A DNA stretch of 63,814 nt, counting the filler, from Lenisia limosa (Eukaryota > Protista > Breviatea): the NCBI GenBank assembly GCA_001655205.1. It is 10 parts of 10 records of this genome, joined end to end, with 100 filler letters (N's around TTAATTAATTAA, not from the genome) between each part and the next. Parts side by side here need not be neighbours in the genome. Positions count along the whole stretch, not along the records: positions 14,625 to 24,914 come from LPNZ01008105.1; 9 more parts are not named here. One strand, 5' to 3'. Positions 14,625 to 24,914 of this stretch are shown here, in pieces. The notes under the pieces were generated by a model. It searched no databases, had not been told where the DNA came from, and saw nothing but the letters and a program-made list of their open reading frames with translations. The stretch's first letter is position 1; each line of letters opens with the position of its first letter. The position numbers were made by a program, and so were the translations under genes.

Positions 14625-15346
14625 AGAAAGAAGAAAAGGAAGAGAACGTCTCCCGCCAACTCGGTGAAGAATGACACAGACATGCCAGTAAGGGGAGCAG
14701 TGCAAGTGATGTTGGGTCCAGGGGTGTTCAATCCTAAGATATGAGTTGCAATATGACAGACGGCACTGTAACTAATCCTAAGTCAAAACATCTGGTCCGG
14801 TCTCGGTTCAGAATATGTTGTTGATCATGTTAGGTTTAATGCTCTGGCTGAATACCTGAATACACCAATAATTGAAAATGATATAGCTACTGTGAAAGTT
14901 TTCTGTCTGGTGTAATGTCACGTCCACTTCGCAGATCAACACACAACATAGTTGAAGTTTCGCCGAAGCTTACCAGAGGCAGCAACGCAAGGCATTGGGA
15001 ATTCCTTTCCGGTCTTCTGCTTGTAGATAGAAAGCTAAGATATTAGCAACGAGAAGCAAAGGAGACAATGCTTACAGAGTCAGAGGTGGCAACACAAGCT
15101 CCACACGCGTTGTTTTGCACAAAGCAGTCGCATGTATATCTAACAAGTCAATACACACCAATAAAAGCTTGGGAAAAGCACAGAAGAAAATCACCGTTTT
15201 TCACCATCCCTAAACTCGCCCCGCTCGGTGCAAAGAAAGTACTTTACATACCTAGTTCCGCCATCAGAGTTGAAAAGGCTGCAGTCCACGGCAAAGGCCG
15301 AACAGGCACAGAGGGCCAGAATGTATAGAAGTATATTTAACTTCAT
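14625..15346 (-). CDS. secreted cysteine-rich protein, 5' part (truncated by contig end)
   Basis: MKLNILLYILALCACSAFAVDCSLFNSDGGT (signal-peptide-like) | RYTCDCFVQNNACGACVATSDS | ...KEFPMPCVAAS... | ...HILGLNTPGPNITCTAPLTGMSVSFFTELA. Confidence 0.65.
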
Positions 15347-15645
15347 TATAACACTATCTAAGTTAATAACAGCGTCCAGGTGTCAAGAAGTAAAAAATAA
15401 AAACTGAAAAAATAATATATATTACATGTGTAGCTAATGTTATTCATCCCTGCCGTTACTATGCTTCAGCCCTCCTCTTGTGCTTGTCTTGTGCAACTCT
15501 TGTGCACGATAGTGAGACGATAGTTTTGTTGTGAGTAGTTGACTATAGGGATTGGTATCGCAAAGAAACGCCTGTCTCCTGATTACCTCGTATATTATGG
15601 ACTGCTCTGCTGCAGGTTGAATCGCTTCCAACACTGCCTCTGAAG

Positions 15646-18600
15646 ATGAATAGTCCCAGTAGAGAGAGGCGGTTTTCATTAACTGATCGAGATAATGTAG
15701 GATGGATCTAGGAGGGATATCCCATTTCGGAAAGAATACTCTGGTGTGATTTCCTCGCTTCTTACCACCCATCTTCAACACTTCCCTCCTCACTTTTTTA
15801 CCATGGCAGGTTGATCCTGTGGAAGAGGCTCTCTGTGGAGCAGATGAGGCTCTTATTAACAGCCACCTTGCTAAATTAGCGGTGAGTGGTTTTTGTTTAT
15901 TGGTGGTCCATTCGTAATTCAGTTTTTTTCGGCATTTATATTATGTATATATAATACCTGTGTGAGGGGCCTGAAGGATTTTTGCCCATTATTTTTATTA
16001 TTATTATTTAAAATATATATCTCTTCCATTCACACTCAAATTTGTAGGGCAATGAAGTCGCACTTGCGCCCTATGTTGAATTCTGCGCTGCAAATGGCTT
16101 TGTTGACTCATTAGAGGCGTTGTTTATACACGGGGCATCAGCTGCATTACCAGGTGTATGCGGCTTGAGTTTAATTATATTCATGTTGCTAATCTAATAT
16201 TGAATTATCATATCATTAACTAAATTGAATTGCCCAAATGATATGACTCCAAAATTCATTTATCAATCAAGTCATTGGGTACATGTTCCTCTTTGTAAAA
16301 TCAGCTGAATATTAACCACTCAGGTGGTATTTGCAACCCCTCTACACGCTGCATCAGATGGGGGGTACGAAGAGGTGGCTCGAGTTCTATTGAAGAATGG
16401 GGCTACCACTACAGTTGTTGACAAAGTTAGCGGGGGAAAGTCAGTTATGTTTCAAATTCATTCATTTTGTTTATCTCACACATCCTCGTTGAAATCAGAA
16501 TGTTGCGATATGTTTTTAGTGTTTTTCAAATCCAACCACTTTGACAATTATAGAATGGATGGACTGCTGCCCAAATAGCTGCAAATTCTCAGCAATGGCA
16601 GGTTGGTGATATCCGTATTAGTTTTGTTTTTGTTGAAACTTTTTCCTGATAGCAGCACCACGCTGGAAAGAGAGTATTGGGTTCATGTTTATTCGATTAG
16701 GTTTTCGGCGCAATTGCAGATGCGGTTCCTCACTGTCTCCCTCCGAACGTGAGCTGTTTTGTAATATATATTTGTTCTTGCAATGCTGAAAAAATCAGTG
16801 ACGAGCAATGGCTGGATTATTTTCCTCCTTTCATCCTCTCATGCGCTTTTAGGATAAGGCAGCAGCAGTGTTCTCAGTTTGTCGTGAGGCCCATCCTTCA
16901 AAATTCGGTTTTGCGAGTCCACTACTACCGAGTGAAATTGAAATCATGGAGGACAATGTTTGCATCTTAATCAGCGAAATTGTACTTCATTATTTTTTAT
17001 TCGTTGTTTCAACCTCTCAAGATGTTTTTTTTTTCTCTAAGCTCAGTTTTCAGTTTTCACCACTGTTACTTTTTAGTACGTTCTACAAGCCCTTGATAGA
17101 AGCCTTCGCCTTGAACGATGGGTTGAAGCCGGAGTTCTTCTTCGGCATAGTGAAATTTCAGTCTCATCTTTAGTGGGTTCAGTTCCCTTTGACGTTTTTT
17201 TTTATGCATAATGTTGTTTATTGCTAATTTGTTAAGAATATTCACATTTACCTATCTCCCCACCTCAGGACTTACAATCACATCCTGGACTCTTACATGC
17301 CGCTGTCAGGGCTGGTGCTCTCACTGCCACCATCACCCTCATACGCCTCAAACACTCAACAACATATCAAGACTCTGTAGGCTTTTTTTTTTGTTTTCAT
17401 TTTGGGAATCCGAAGATATTTTATTGTCCTTATTTTATCATTTAGTTCGGTCGTACACCCCTTCATATCGCCGCTAAAACTAGAGATCCTGTGAGAAGAA
17501 TCCAGGTTTGTTTGATAACTGAAGGCATAAAAGGAGCATCGACACGGAATATAATATACTATATATCGATATGTATATGGTACAACAAATGATATGTATC
17601 TCTGGATTTGTTTCTGACACATTAGTTTTGTGAGCTATTGTATTCCTCGGGAGCGGATTTTTTTGCCGAAGACAAGGTGAGAAGAGGTTCATCGTATACT
17701 TTTGATTTCATCTCAAATAAAGAATCAGATAGCAGAGTTTTTCTTTGACCTGAACATGTATTATTACCCTGAAAGCGTCATTAATGATTGATTCTTTAAT
17801 TATTTTTCCTTTTCCTTTTTGTTTTGTGTGTTCCAATCACCCAAAACCAGCTTGGAAAGGCACCAGTTGAATTGTTGATCTCTATGGGAGACTACAAATA
17901 CGCCAAAGATCTTGTTATGAACTCCGCAGGCGTGAGCACGGGGATAATATAATAATGTTTAATGACATTATTAAAATTGTGATAATCATGTTGAAAGTCA
18001 ACAATGTTATCTTTGAATGTGGACTATCACGTGGTGTTTTATATTATTATTCACAGATGCACATTCACTAAAATATAGTGATCGGGATAAGTCTTGACCG
18101 ATTTGCTTCATGATTTCCCAAAGACAATCGGTCAAGACTTATCACTTCACTGCAAATGTAAATGTTGTTCTAATATATAGTTATTATAGCGGTGATACCT
18201 TGTATAATTTATTTCTCGATTGATCCAATTATGGTTGAATGACTAAGATGGTTTTCTAAGCCCTAAAATATCTTTAAATGTTTGTGTTATACTCCCTTCC
18301 CCTCGCCAGCCCAACTCAGCATCGCGGGCTTTGCACTTCTTCGCACGAATGCTGGACATTCAGGCTCTTTTGGCTGTTCAGAAGTCTGTGGGGAAGACCG
18401 AATTCGACAAACTGCTTCTCATACGAGACCATGTAAGAGGTGTTTTGTTAATGTGAGAATTGTTTGATTTATATATTGGGTAATTACCTGTTTTGTATTT
18501 TAAGAGTATTATCTATCTTTTATGAACCTTTAAACGATTTTCAAATTCTTAATATAACTTTTATGTAGACTGGATGGTTGCCTTTACACAGTGCTTGTTG

Positions 18601-21600
18601 GCCTGAACACGCTGAGTTCTTCACGCGCAAGTACGATTCGTCAATACTTGTCAAAAAACCGTTTGCGGACTAAAATGAGAACTATTATCTTGCAAAGACA
18701 CACACTATTTTCGGTTGCTTTCGAAAATAAATCATATTATTTGTTGGAAATAAAAATATCCATATTTAATTTCCAAATACAATTTCGTGCTAAAATTTCA
18801 TAACATGTCAAATAAAATATCATTGGGCATCGCACGAAAGGGTCGTCTGATATGACTATCGGCTTGCACAAATGAATCATTTGAAAGTTACTTTAACAAT
18901 TCAGGCTCAATGGCAAAGTATTGTGTCGAAGATGGAACGACACCCTCAACCTTCTTCATCCTCCACCGTACCATTCATCAATGAATTCTGTTTGGTGGAT
19001 AGTTTGGTGTCTTTTTCTACAAGGGGTATGTTCCCTTAGTTTTATTCGTCGTGTGCATAGTTTAGCTTGAATGAGGAAGGGGGTTTGTTTACCGTAAATT
19101 CACAAGACTTTGTCGTGCTTCAAAAATAGTGCTTATCACTTTCTCATGCAGCTTGCGACTATTTTGTTCTGTTTCGTGTATGACCACTAACAATGTTACC
19201 CTGTAGATTCATCATTGTTCACTGCTCACCCCACTAGACGGGGGATTGTCGTCACGTTCTCTGTAAACGCTTCTCCAATCTTATCGACCTGGACACTACG
19301 CAATTGGATGACAGCATCATGAAGTGTTCATGCTACGCTGATACTACGGATCAGTTCACTAACAGGTGCGCATACTGAGTTTCATCTGTGGGTAAAATGT
19401 TAGAGAAAGTCGCTGTCTTTCCATAAATTGAGATTACTCATCTTTTTTTAATGAAATATAATTCCTTTTTAGGATACTTTAATAACAAAACGACTCCTTT
19501 GTTACTCTTTAGTCATTTGAACTTCTGCCGTTCAGAAGCAGGGGATTTCGAGTCGTGTTCGCCTTCTGACCTATCCTCATTACTGGATGACATTCGGTGT
19601 GGTCGATGCACGTTTGTTATAGGAAATGGCGTGACCCTGGCTACTATGGAGGGACAAGGCGAGGTTGGGGGGTGGGGGCTGTCAATGAAGTAAATTCATA
19701 TCATATGTATTATACAATTATTTCAAGAATAGGAAACGGCAAGAAATAACGGTATTGAATGTTGTTGTTTTGTTGATTATTTTAGTGTGCCCTAATCTTG
19801 TTGTGATGGATAACTATTCACAATGAAACTTTGACATCATTTTCCTTCATCATTTAAACAATATCGTCCATATGATATACGTTTTAAACTTAATATTGAC
19901 CATTCCCAGCACTGCATCTCACTGAACAATCTGCTGAAGGAAATTCAACAAGGAGAAAATCGCAAGCAAACCGTTAGAAAACGCCTCTTGTGAGCTGGAG
20001 TAGTGTTTCTTTACGCCTCAGTCAATTCCCTCGCTAACACCATAGATCATCTCGTCCAGATGGCGCTGTCACGCGTGTTGTTGCGCAGGAAGCCCTTGAT
20101 GCCGCCGGTCCGAAGGTGTTTAAGCGACTCGAGCGTCTCTTTACTTTGAGCGGCAAAAAAGAGTCCGTTGAACAAGTTCGAGGGTGTTTTTATGATATAT
20201 CCTCACTGCAGTTTTGATTTTGCTCATCTGTAGACTCCTTCCTAAATGATAACTAATAACTCTAAGTTCGATATATAGTATATTACAACACTATAATGGC
20301 GTATTAATTATAAAGATATGATCGATAGGTGTAGTTTTCCGAAATAGTTTTGCTCAGATTTACTTTGCAGGCGAAAAACAGCCCCATTATCAAGGCTTTG
20401 AAAGACCTTCAGGACCTACCTCTCCTTAAAAGGGGTTCGTTACATCGGTTTTACAATCTCATTGCCACGACCAATTACGACGATGTACTTGAAAATGTTT
20501 GTAATGGGAGCTGGCTGAATGATGCAGTCACCGTCAAGTAACACATCATACCTCTTCATATTTCCTGTTTTCATCAATTTATGATCACAAATACTACACT
20601 TTGAACTTATTTAACAGTGTCCAGGGTTTTGGACTCCTTGACAGCTGCGATCATGACGTTGATGCTGGTGAGCTTTCTTGGCAACTCCGAGCAGGAATCA
20701 TTGATGGAACAGTGCATATTCCGTCGTTGAACACTATGATTGCCCAGCAAATGGCAGAAATGGTTGGGGGGGGGGGGCAGAAAAACTATTCAAATTTTGG
20801 CCATTTATTTGTCCATGTTCCTTTCCCTCTATTAACTTAACTTTGAAGGTTGACTATGCGTGGAGGGGTGAGTTACTTGCATCTCAGCAAACCCCGCCCA
20901 TTATCCATATTCATGGTTATGTCGCCCGTCCAGAGCAAGTCGTTCTTGGCCAGGTATTGTTTCAGAGAATGCAATCGAAGCTCGTTTATGAATAATGTTG
21001 CCTTCAATCCTTATATTTAAGTTGACATGTTCTGACACTGCTAGGACAGTTATCGTAAGATTGTGCTTAATACTGCCCAAGCTGATCGTCTCAAAAGTGT
21101 TGGCTTTCTGAGACGTCTAATTTTCATCGGATGCTCAGCGGAAAGTCTCACAGATTATCATTTCGGCCATATTTTCGACTCTTTGCAAGCGTAAGTGGTG
21201 ATCAACAATATTTTTGTTGCAAGTTTTACCTTGTACTACGGGAAAATCTGGTAATATTGTGCTTTAAGTCATCTTATTGAGTTTTATATTCTTTGCAATA
21301 ATTTGAATACATTGGTTAGGACTAGGAGGTTTTCAGCAGGTCCCTTATTATGTTTCTTTTTATTTTATTTATTTGATGTATCAACATCCACTTTTGAATA
21401 TAAGCATGTTTTAAACTTCTTCTTTTCTAAAAACTTCTGTAACTAACATACATTAGTTCTTTTGGAAGCCGTAGACATGTTGTCGTTGCCCCTGCAGCGC
21501 AAGTCTATAACTATCCCCATTTCTTGGTAAGGTATCAAAGAAGAAAACTAGTAATACGTATATTTATTCTTTTATTTGAGGTTTTATTAATTTTCTGTTG

Positions 21601-22661
21601 ATACCACGATTGGCTCTCCACCCCGTCCAGTAATGTTGATGATGTAGGTTCTCGGATTTAAGGCAGGTGAAATACAAAAAACCGAATCTAAATTCCATCA
21701 TTTTGCTGATACAATTCAAGTGGGTTTGGGGTGCATTTTTTATTTTTTGTTTTCCCCCAAGTTAACGTTTCTCAGGCACTAAGGGACCTGGCATATGGTC
21801 TCAGAGTTCCAAAGGATTATGGCATTCAGGTTTGGACATCTACCCCACTTAATTCAACATTTTCCAGAAAAAGGGGTAATCACAGCGAAATCAACCTTCA
21901 ATTCAATCTCCATTGATAATCTATCTAATATTTTTGGAGGCTCACAATATACGCAAGCTGTAAAAACGAATTGGAGGAGAATGTGTCAAAGCTGTTTAAT
22001 CATACCCCCTAGTAACTCTCTGTTAGATATCTCCACAGTAAATTTCTCCCGAATTGATAACTTAAAACAGCATACTGTCGTTACTGGATTGTAGGTTCGA
22101 GACGCAAATGGAACGACACATGTTGTTACTCGCTACGCACAGCCCCATCAGTCATGTGGCACCGAATTTCCATCGTTAGTTGTTTTATTTTTGTTTTTGT
22201 GGAAGTAACAGTGTGTTTTTATTGTTTTCAAATACTGGGTTTTTCACTTATTGGTGGGTTTAGTACTTCTCTCGAAATGCAAGGCTATAGCACAAAAGGA
22301 AGGGATCCTGAGAGACAACCTGCACAGGTTGGCAAATATAAATGTTCACCTTATAAAAGTTGATTTTTTTTTTCTTTTACTTCATAAAACTATTCTTCTG
22401 TAATTATATCCTTCCTCGTCTAAGTTCTTTTTCTCAAATGTTTGATCCCATCCTTCATCAGAGTCGGTACCAGCTCCACCCTGACGACTTATTCGCGATG
22501 CGCTCTTTGTCGGTTCCAGAGGACACAATGAGCGTTGAGAGCATGGAGGCAGAAGTGGCGTCGTTCATTCCATCACGGTTAGTGTTGCTTATATTCACAT
22601 ATCATCTGTATTCTCCAGTAATTTGACAATTTTGTTTGAATCTTTTTTGTCCTTAATGTGA
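15646..22661 (+). CDS. ankyrin-repeat protein with a C-terminal SIR2-like (SIR2_2-type) domain; start and stop approximate
   Basis: Ankyrin exons: TPLHAASDGGYEEVARVLLKNGATTTVVDK|NGWTAAQIAA, LLHAAVRAG, FGRTPLHIAAK, ELLYSSGADFFAEDK|LGKAPVELL, TGWLPLHSAC. SIR2 exons (phases checked): LLDDIRCGRCTFVIGNGVT, LIATTNYDDVLEN (20461-20496), IIHIHGYVARPEQVVLGQ|DSY, LIFIGCSAESLTDYHFGHIF. The join across ~18640-18900 was not resolved. Confidence 0.75.
18077..18150. repeat. intronic hairpin element (18-bp perfect inverted repeat)
   Basis: GATAAGTCTTGACCGATT (18086-18103), 22-nt loop, AATCGGTCAAGACTTATC (18126-18143); related copy at 29341-29401. Confidence 0.85.
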
Positions 22662-24200
22662 CCGCAGCTCGGCATCACCCGTAGAAGACAGTACTCTGGT
22701 TTCTCCATTCTTAACTCGCGAAATTTCACACACAGTGGGGAAGGATTAATTATATTTATCGTTAATAATGTAGCCACCCTCCATTCTACCGAAATTCACT
22801 CCCTCGCCGCCACAACCCATCAAACCCAAAGCTAAAAGGGGACGACAGCGCAGACGGTCAAAGCATAAGAAGCCAACATCATCTGACTTGCCTCGGGATA
22901 TTAAAGTTTGTGTTTGGGACAAAACAAATTCACTATTTAAGTTTGCACCCATTGAGTTCTTGGTTTCTTCTTCATTTATTATTCTTGTTTTGTTTCTATT
23001 GATGTTTACAGTAGTAGTGTAGACTGTTCAATGTATTTTTCAACATTTTTCCGAAAGCATATGGAGAAGGGTCTTGTTTGGCATTCAAAAGTCACTTCCA
23101 CCCAGTTGGAGATATAATACAATATATTACACGCTACACAGCATAGCTCCACCTCATGGAAGCACTATAATACAAGAGTATACAACCATTTAAACATCAA
23201 ACAAAATCATTAGTTGACCATCTTTTTCGCCTTCCTAGCAGCTTTCAACTGTTTCATTGCGACTTCGAACGGGACTTTCAGGTCCTCACATATAGTCTAG
23301 AGTTGTAAGCCAATAAAAGATACCTAATTGGATAAATAGTGTCGAGGATGATATTGGGGCATCTTTAACAAACTATTACGTTAGATATTTACATCACATA
23401 AACACACATTTTTAAATATATTATGTCGTGAAACGTAAATAAATAAATGTTCAAATAGGGATAGACCACCACAATAACATAATTCTTCACAATCTCAATT
23501 CCAAGAAAAAAATTCATTGTAACCAGTACCACTCCCATCTTACCGTTGCAAGAGTTGTTTCGATTTGCTCCCTCAGATTGCCACCTTGCTTCGCTGATAC
23601 CTTCAACCTACGGTATGTGATATTCAATAGAACAGTTATTAACGTCAAAATTCAGTGACTACTTGCACAACCCATTTAAACATCGCAAGAACAAAAAAGG
23701 TGGGTAAGCGTGAAATATACAATGAGCACAATAGTCGTCTACCCCCTCCGCCCAAAGGCAGCTCATAGTAGCACTATTTGAGGTCGTTATATATATAAAA
23801 GAACAGGAACTCACGTATAAAAGGTGATGAAAACAGGCCTTAAAAAAAAAATTTTTGATAGTAAATCCTGTGATAATGTCTTTTTCGCCTAATACGGCAC
23901 TTTAGACATCATTAAAGATCAAGAGTCCCCTATCGGTTTTCAACTCCCAACAAGCCAATATTGTCCAAGGAGGTCTCCATACACCTAGGCTGCAGCATCG
24001 GCTGTTTTGGCTCCAGTTCCCCGACGACACTGAAGGTAGGAGGAATCACTCTGGAACCGTCTTGCTATCATCCTAATTATTATGATTCATTTCTTAAAAT
24101 TCCTATTATACTATTCACTCATTCATCATCTAACCGCGGCGCCGTATGAGCTTTCGGTATCTTGGGAGGTCGAGATTATATAATACAAAAAGAAAGGGGA
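22653..24200 (-). CDS. 3' part of a hypothetical gene convergent with the Ank-SIR2 gene
   Basis: Exons IISTSQDTESSYGAA, LKVSAKQGGNLREQIETTLAT, TICEDLKVPFEVAMKQLKAARKAKKM, LLNAKQDPSPYAFGKMLKNTLNSLHYY|CKSDDVGFLCFDRLRCRPLLALGLMGCGGEGVNFGRMEG|VKNGETRVLSSTGDAELRSH*; last two joins are phase-consistent. Confidence 0.55.
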
Positions 24201-24229
24201 AGAGTAACTCCATTCTTTTATAACTCGAG

Positions 24230-24914
24230 TGCTCTAGTGTTGAAAAATTTGAAGAAATCACAGATTCATTATTATTTGTCCTTCATTGTTCTACAATTGA
24301 AAAAAATGGAAGAAATTCCAGAATGTGAAGATACACCATGTTTCCAAATGCTCTGGTGTTGAAAAAAATGGAAGAAATTCCAGAATNNNNNNNNNNCCGT
24401 TTCCAAATGCTCTGGTGTTGAAAAAAATGGAAGAAATTCCAGAATATGAATTATTACCACGTTTCCAAATGCTCTGGTGTTGAAAAAAATGGAAGAAATT
24501 CCAGAATGTGAAGATACACCACGTTTCCAAATGCTCTGGTGTTGAAAAAAATGGAAGAAATTCCAGAATGTGAAGATATACCACGTTTCCAAATGCTCTG
24601 GTGTTGAAAACAATGGAAGAAATTCCAGAATAGGAAGATATACCATGTTTCCAAATGCTCTGGTGTTGAAAAAAATGGAAGAAATTCCAGAATATGAAGA
24701 TATACCNNNNNNNNNNNNNNNNNNNNNNNNNNNNNNNNNNNNNNNNNNNNNNNNNNNNNNNNNNNNNNNNNNNNNNNNNNNNNNNNNNNNNNNNNNNNNN
24801 NNNNNNNNNNNNNNNNNNNNNNTGAAGAAATTCCAGAATAGGAAGATACACCATGTTTCCAAATGCTCTGGTGTTGAAAAAAATGGAAGAAATTCCAGAA
24901 TAGGAAGATATACC
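24230..24914. repeat. 62-bp tandem repeat (minisatellite) running into the contig end
   Basis: Unit TTCCAAATGCTCTGGTGTTGAAAAAAATGGAAGAAATTCCAGAATGTGAAGATACACCATGT; at least 7 readable copies interrupted by N runs, plus a degenerate copy at ~24230. Confidence 0.95.

Follow-up and report, generated by a model that had tools for sequence, protein, structure and literature searches.

SIR2_2/SIRim domains are among the immune modules common to bacteria and eukaryotes, and enzymes of this type serve in bacterial as well as animal immunity. We describe here a locus of the breviate protist Lenisia limosa (assembly GCA_001655205.1) that is most likely one 30-exon gene, at positions 15646-22749 on the plus strand, encoding one protein of about 920 residues with ankyrin repeats and a domain of this kind. 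Positions are those of the window, that is, the whole stretch of 63,814 nucleotides (nt); the analysis was confined to the piece at 14625-24914.

According to Bonhomme et al. (2024), 19% of eukaryotic genomes encode SIRim proteins, which fall into five clades (A-E) and are often fused to immune-type domains (10.1101/2024.09.18.613514). The traits of the family are a GxG motif, an xxNxD motif, the lack of a zinc site, NAD+-cleaving (NADase) activity and fusion to immune-type domains (10.1101/2024.09.18.613514; PMC12700824). The Lenisia locus resembles the eukaryotic SIRim proteins in being an intron-bearing eukaryotic gene with a zinc-less SIR2_2-type domain, GxG and xxNxD motifs and an ankyrin fusion (10.1101/2024.09.18.613514). 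Clade A fusions are built as SIRim-NACHT/NB-ARC-ankyrin or TPR (10.1101/2024.09.18.613514), whereas the present protein would carry its repeats N-terminally and its SIR2_2 domain C-terminally, with no Walker A motif or nucleotide-binding oligomerisation domain (NOD). The central NACHT/NB-ARC NTPase of this NLR-like architecture is missing: no Walker A motif G....GK[ST] occurs anywhere in the 919-residue model, and no NACHT or NB-ARC Pfam match was obtained on the exons scanned (all database tests were run exon by exon). Because SIRim fusions to immune-type domains, ankyrin repeats included, had already been described in 2024 (10.1101/2024.09.18.613514), the ankyrin-SIRim fusion is, judged from its sequence, less novel than the preliminary description of this locus implied, and appears as a divergent, NOD-less form with N-terminal repeats; what that description said of the family, of the GxG, Asn and His residues, of the spliced gene and of a fusion of its two halves is supported.

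The nearest mechanistic analogue would be DSR2, which likewise combines a SIR2_2 NADase domain and a trigger-binding solenoid in a single chain (PMC11850899, PMC11263360). DSR2 differs in being bacterial, with an N-terminal SIR2 domain, a HEAT-like alpha-solenoid as sensor and a MID domain, and PADLOC and PDB searches gave no exon-level sequence relationship to it. ThsA of the Thoeris system shares Pfam SIR2_2 and has its catalytic Asn and His in TTNYD- and HG-type motifs; its SIR2 domain is fused to a ligand-binding domain, SLOG or Macro, and a signalling nucleotide activates it. No exon matched SLOG or Macro in Pfam or PADLOC (a search of low power with short exon queries), and phmmer with exon queries gave no match to solved ThsA chains. 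FAM118A and FAM118B have a eukaryotic, zinc-less SIR2_2 domain with presumed NAD processing (PMC12700824), but their clade is vertebrate-specific, its members are at least 41% identical, and they are single-domain filament formers with no ankyrin array. Cryo-EM-derived FAM118B structures have been described (PMC12700824); since our exons found no PDB match at E up to 10, the present protein is probably not a close FAM118 relative, this being a weak test with short queries and with the presence of FAM118B in the PDB copy unconfirmed. Classical sirtuins (PF02146) share a distant common fold, in which GxG is likewise followed by Asn and then His, but have TQNID in place of TTNYD and a CxxC...CxxC zinc ribbon after HG that is absent here.

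Family placement of the two halves

The C-terminal half holds the GNG, TTNYD, HIHG and IGCS..D motifs in SIR2 order. The four motifs quoted in the preliminary description were all located on the plus strand by three-frame translation with exact coordinates: VIGNGVT (the GxG NAD loop) at 19616-19636, residue 488 of the model; IATTNYDDVLE (xxNxD) at 20461-20493, with its Asn at N588; IIHIHG at 20900-20917, downstream of the Asn motif, with its His at H679; and LIFIGCSAESLTD (the IGCS..D motif) at 21117-21155. The TTNYD exon matched Pfam SIR2_2 (PF13289) with E=0.027 over profile positions 2-20, and the HIHG exon matched it with E=0.0049 over positions 34-65. Their scores (15.0 and 17.4 bits) each lie under the 24.5-bit cut-off; the matches are collinear, with a simple sum of 32.4 bits, and the two exons picked the same family among 24,736. 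In ESM-Atlas, SIR2_2 accounted for 85 of the 100 nearest named clusters of the TTNYD exon, and the clusters nearest to the HIHG exon were SIR2_2, AbiH and DUF4917; AbiH is counted among SIRim proteins (10.1101/2024.09.18.613514), and a few of the DUF4917 cluster members also carry PF13289. The same resource returned no family for the IGCS exon. No exon matched PF02146 (classical SIR2) at E up to 1, the protein has a single CxxC (CGRC, residue 482), which lies upstream of GNG, and none after HG, and a motif scan found no zinc-ribbon cysteine tetrad in the 919-residue model. The earlier placement of the sirtuin-like half in the SIR2_2/SIRim group, as opposed to the classical sirtuins, is thus supported at the level of sequence, by two collinear PF13289 matches, the lack of any to PF02146 and the missing tetrad.

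Homology searches with exon-sized queries returned no relatives, so that the predicted domain is divergent from all that such queries can reach. The search for homologous proteins gave zero candidates, none was found among related loci in bacterial and archaeal genomes, and tblastn against plasmids gave one spurious match only. Two exact-pattern scans of metagenome contigs for the spliced complementary DNA of the locus found nothing, no encoding contig is on record for two open reading frames (ORFs) of the window, and Rfam gave no match in the piece analysed.

The N-terminal half was scored in exon-sized units against an approximate 33-residue designed ankyrin consensus, 2000 random sequences of matched composition serving as controls. 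Two units scored strongly (p<0.0005), five nominally (p 0.01-0.04) and four non-significantly. The significant units group in two clusters, with about seven recognisable, in agreement with the 7-8 repeats in two clusters reported from first inspection. The p values in cluster 1 are 0.024, <0.0005 and 0.0115, and the spacer formed by exons 7-8 had no significant ankyrin score in this consensus test (p=0.90 and 0.55). Against Pfam Ank (PF00023), the exon at 16324-16425 matched with E=1.8e-6 and 28.3 bits (cut-off 21.1 bits) and that at 17446-17505 with E=0.0027 and 18.4 bits; with at least one repeat above the Pfam cut-off inside an array of adjacent 33-residue units, the product counts as an ankyrin protein. 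Between 16048 and 18660 exon boundaries follow ankyrin units, and several exons of 96-108 nt hold one unit of 32-36 residues each, all in phase 0, as would be expected had the array grown through duplication of exons.

Linkage of the ankyrin and SIR2_2 halves

Left unaltered, and with exon 17 beginning at acceptor 19513, the genome sequence gives a single ORF of 919-931 residues from ATG 15646 to TAA 22747-49, in 30 exons and 29 GT-AG introns, in which the sole stop is the terminal one; the two lengths are set by three same-phase donors for the end of exon 15. The protein would run from ankyrin repeats (residues ~40-380) through a linker of about 80 residues to the SIR2_2/SIRim domain (~460-800) and a low-complexity tail. 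The preliminary description had allowed for two separate genes on either side of 18640-18900, and the question proved answerable from public RNA contigs, hinging on acceptor 19513 and on the length of one homopolymer. Two public runs of one study were placed on 16700-22699: X1, consisting of poly(A) RNA contigs (sample S1), and X2, which is apparently DNA (sample S2). From these, 15 GT-AG joints were read directly and four more were recovered from contig pieces and exact bin-depth arithmetic. Spliced poly(A) RNA contigs back about 20 of the 29 introns, so the gene is genuinely eukaryotic and spliced, which bears out the earlier statement that more than 20 introns set it apart from bacterial contamination.

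On the ankyrin side, one RNA contig lies over 16700-16748 with a loose end that matches exon 7, and contig 1 (581 nt) contains the joints 17172>17269, 17376>17446, 17505>17626, 17676>17851, 17931>18310, 18432>18569 and 18660>18905. Contig 2 (278 nt) continues from exon 15 (75 nt within it, by depth arithmetic) to 19238-19365 and further on, its piece 19238-19363 being free of differences. A further contig supplies the joints 19663>19910 and 19989>20046 (the latter from bin depths), contig 3 supplies 20953>21045, and contig 4 (721 nt) chains seven exons from 21190 to 22668, with continuous frame through its joints over exons 23-26, and reaches about 130 nt beyond the stop. The RNA thus leads from the last ankyrin exon (14) through exons 15 and 16 to the GNG exon (17). 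Since the contigs chain exons 14-17 and the genomic ORF is uninterrupted with acceptor 19513, the one-gene-or-two doubt is largely resolved in favour of one gene, spliced contigs and open frame now bridging the earlier gap; the homopolymer length in one RNA contig remains discordant, as set out below.

The fused ORF stays open with exon 17 beginning at 19513, a start supported by two observations. Over 19506-19565 about 25 of 30 31-mers are expected in the RNA if the exon starts at 19513 and at most three of 30 if it starts at 19536, and the RNA run contains four of the five sampled. In addition, with joints placed leftmost, an acceptor that has T before it (AG 19511-12) accounts for the end of the RNA piece at 19363; the acceptors at 19535 and 19541 have C before them and do not. 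The GNG exon boundary given earlier moves accordingly to 19513. Starts at 19536 or 19542 would break the frame in all combinations and are ruled out by the same 31-mers. A separate SIR2 gene starting from the intronic ATG 19451 was rejected on the zero RNA cover, by depth arithmetic, across 19366-19510. Two further ideas, +1 ribosomal frameshifting and a non-standard genetic code, were abandoned after the frame closed.

Coding potential was assessed with a leave-one-out codon-usage log-likelihood test trained on the exons of this gene. Of 28 exons, 26 scored best in the frame of the model. Exon 16 has only one open frame and scores +4.8, as coding in the fused frame alone.

Several observations weigh against reading the locus as one gene for a SIR2_2 fusion protein. 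Among 1.84 billion representatives searched by phmmer with the TTNYD exon, no true relative came up (one spurious repeat-protein match), four SIR2 exons searched by phmmer against all PDB chains found no sirtuin-like chain at E up to 10 with these short queries, and no single exon matched in PADLOC plus NCBIfam. Exon 15 looks non-coding in every frame by codon usage. Nine joints, in the 5' exons and over 20115-20849, are without RNA support, and three of them have in-frame alternatives (16957/16981; 20115|20371 versus 20183|20358; exon 21 in or out). With exon 21 included, the Asn-His spacing is 91 residues versus about 40 in the Pfam profile. Finally, at 18653-58 RNA contig 1 has seven A then CC (the letters ACC standing between 18658 and 18905), against six A in the window and in the X2 DNA contig; six A keeps the ORF open, and seven A shifts the frame so that the ankyrin ORF stops at 19264.

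Since RNA and DNA come from different samples, the possible causes of this discordance include an allele or strain difference; it could also be slippage in reverse transcription (RT) or polymerase chain reaction (PCR), or real heterogeneity, and there is a residual chance that certain transcripts or strains do not give a single protein spanning both halves. In its strong form, one transcription unit would yield two products: expressed copies would truly have seven A (through allele, strain or transcript heterogeneity), the ankyrin ORF would end at 19264, and the SIR2 part would be untranslated, internally started (for example at ATG 18982) or part of a transcript targeted for decay, leaving in effect an ankyrin protein and a decoupled or silenced SIR2 module. 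We consider this improbable. The A7+CC reading at depth 8 in RNA contig 1, the stop at 19264 that follows from it, the non-coding score of exon 15 and the difference between samples S1 and S2 all speak for it, but both DNA sources have six A, and with six A some 90 linker codons are open and the halves are joined exactly in frame, which is unlikely by chance. Moreover, in the SIR2 frame of the spliced mRNA, from the upstream stop to GNG, an ATG occurs only within the fused frame, exon 16 is coding in that frame alone, and the seventh A could stem from slippage during RT or PCR that was then copied in duplicates. Seven A combined with skipping of exon 16 would also be in frame, but such skipping lacks RNA support and is needless given acceptor 19513.

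The same discordance, together with the non-coding look of exon 15, the low expression (RNA depths 2-23) and the lack of detected close relatives, might instead point to a decaying locus, that is, a pseudogene that is still transcribed and has kept its SIR2-like motifs by chance or because it arose recently. This is very improbable in view of an ORF of 919 residues over 30 exons without an internal stop, the preference for the correct frame in nearly all exons of the codon test, the intactness of every catalytic-type motif and accurate splicing at about 20 sites. To the explanation that joins these results, a 30-exon gene for ankyrin clusters, linker, SIR2_2/SIRim domain and tail, with a proposed cleavage of NAD+ under ankyrin control, we give a probability of roughly 0.6.

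Proposed mechanism and role

By analogy with ThsA, DSR1/2, SIR2-HerA, SIR2-APAZ and FAM118A/B, the SIR2_2 domain would bind and cleave NAD+, as an NADase or by a related ADP-ribosyl transfer (PMC7272460, PMC11850899, PMC12700824, 10.1101/2024.09.18.613514). The ankyrin array may form the protein-protein interaction part that controls this enzyme, whether it binds a partner or ligand, keeps the enzyme switched off or makes it oligomerise, and the outcome would be a one-chain sensor/regulator-effector with a logic comparable to that of DSR2, in which SIR2 is paired with a solenoid sensor. If true, a NOD-less ankyrin-SIRim fusion would be a simple two-part system in which repeats control an NAD-consuming effector in a eukaryote, and would be one more case of domain shuffling around SIRim.

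By this analogy a role in immunity or cell death is plausible, and a FAM118-like signalling or scaffold role is equally open. The protein could be a fusion and yet not an immune effector at all, its SIR2_2 domain serving housekeeping or signalling (by processing NAD weakly, by ADP-ribosylating a partner or as a scaffold or filament of the kind proposed for FAM118) and its ankyrins localising it or binding a partner. We hold this to be possible, if on the unlikely side. It would accord with FAM118A/B being individually weak NAD processors that form filaments (PMC12700824), with human SIRim signalling without causing cell death (10.1101/2024.09.18.613514), with ankyrin repeats being generic interaction modules and with the DNA depth, which is even over the gene at about 34x, so that run X2 shows no hint of collapsed paralogue copies. 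Against it stand the intact catalytic-type residues and the fusion of SIRim to a repeat array, which is typical of immune-type architectures (10.1101/2024.09.18.613514); the present data do not discriminate between the two readings. A bolder form of the immune role, which we offer as speculation and think quite unlikely, is a self-contained, NOD-less immune receptor of a unicellular eukaryote in which the ankyrins would directly sense a pathogen or viral protein and free the SIR2_2 NADase, DSR2-like but independently assembled, with A6/A7 as an on/off frameshift switch or a null allele of a costly suicide effector.

Gene model and surroundings

The modelled exons are listed in Table 1. The preliminary description had ended the gene at 22661, which lies in the last intron; the coding sequence ends at TAA 22747-49 and the 3' untranslated region extends to at least 22881. 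Its frame for the exon at 21457-21526 is likewise replaced, the exon reading SFGSRRHVVVAPAAQ... instead.

Table 1. Modelled exons of the putative ankyrin-SIR2_2 gene, in window positions
Feature	Positions	Strand	Remarks
Exon 1	15646-15696	+	Putative start codon, MNSPSRERRFSLTDRDN; inferred, without RNA cover
Exons 2-6	15810-15881, 16048-16155, 16324-16425, 16554-16601, 16701-16748	+	Ankyrin cluster 1, ~3 units
Exons 7-8	16853-16957 or -16981; 17077-17172	+	Degenerate helical spacer
Exons 9-14	17269-17376, 17446-17505, 17626-17676, 17851-17931, 18310-18432, 18569-18660	+	Ankyrin cluster 2, ~4-5 units
A6 run, end of exon 14	18653-18658	+	A7 in RNA contig
Exon 15, linker exon 1	18905-19025	+	3' end 18989, 19001 or 19025, phase identical
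Exon 16, linker exon 2	19238-19365	+	TGDCRHVLCKRF...DQFTN; Cys/His-rich
Exon 17, predicted start of SIR2_2 domain	19513-19663	+	GxG NAD loop VIGNGVT; acceptor AG 19511-12
Exons 18-19	19910-19989, 20046-20115 or -20183	+	Helical small subdomain
Exon 20	20371-20537	+	IATTNYDDVLE; catalytic-type Asn, residue 588 of 919-residue model
Exon 21	20618-20762	+	Inferred 48-residue insertion between Asn and His motifs; without RNA cover
Exon 22	20849-20953	+	IIHIHG; catalytic-type His, residue 679
Exons 23-26	21045-21190 (with LIFIGCSAESLTD), 21457-21526, 21648-21719, 21776-21829	+	Remaining Rossmann-type domain
Exons 27-30	22095-22174, 22264-22327, 22462-22577, 22668-22749	+	Ser/Thr/Pro-rich C-terminal tail, TAA 22747-49

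Exon 1 has a canonical donor and joins exon 2 in frame, with a weak codon score of +0.4; a start at 15646 fits the switch of AT skew near 15430 (a second switch lies near 23400) and the divergent minus-strand ORF from 15346. The linker is Cys/His-rich (six Cys, four His in ~80 residues) and gave no family match, and the C-terminal tail is rich in Ser/Thr/Pro over its last ~113 residues. Exon 21 was retained for its codon score of +12.9, the second-highest in the gene, and may be a cassette exon; the in-frame alternative join 20532>20849 skips it and leaves an Asn-His spacing of 41 residues. At the G-run 20757-20770 the main X2 DNA contig has one G more than the window; the run is placed within the inferred intron 20763-20848, so that the model is unaffected, and the extra G would make 20618-20953 a single open frame.

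Opposite-strand neighbours bound the gene on either side, a divergent minus-strand ORF from 15346 and a minus-strand terminal coding piece that ends at 23213. The former (15194-15346) begins MKLNILLYILALCACSAFA..., is signal-peptide-like and had no Pfam match; some 300 nt of upstream region are shared between it and ATG 15646. The latter, at 23213-23296, looks like the final coding exon of a neighbour in convergent orientation (...KVPFEVAMKQLKAARKAKKMVN followed by a stop), again with no Pfam match.

Two repeats were seen in the piece. Intron 12 (17932-18309) contains, at 18086-18143, a 23-nt inverted repeat whose spacer is 12 nt long; X2 DNA contigs break there and the summed word depth rises from about 34 to about 3300, so that it looks like a very high-copy foldback element or one akin to a miniature inverted-repeat transposable element. 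At 24297-24706 a 62-nt unit is repeated in tandem, with 6.7 copies and 88% matches; N gaps break the array, and both strands have long repetitive ORFs.

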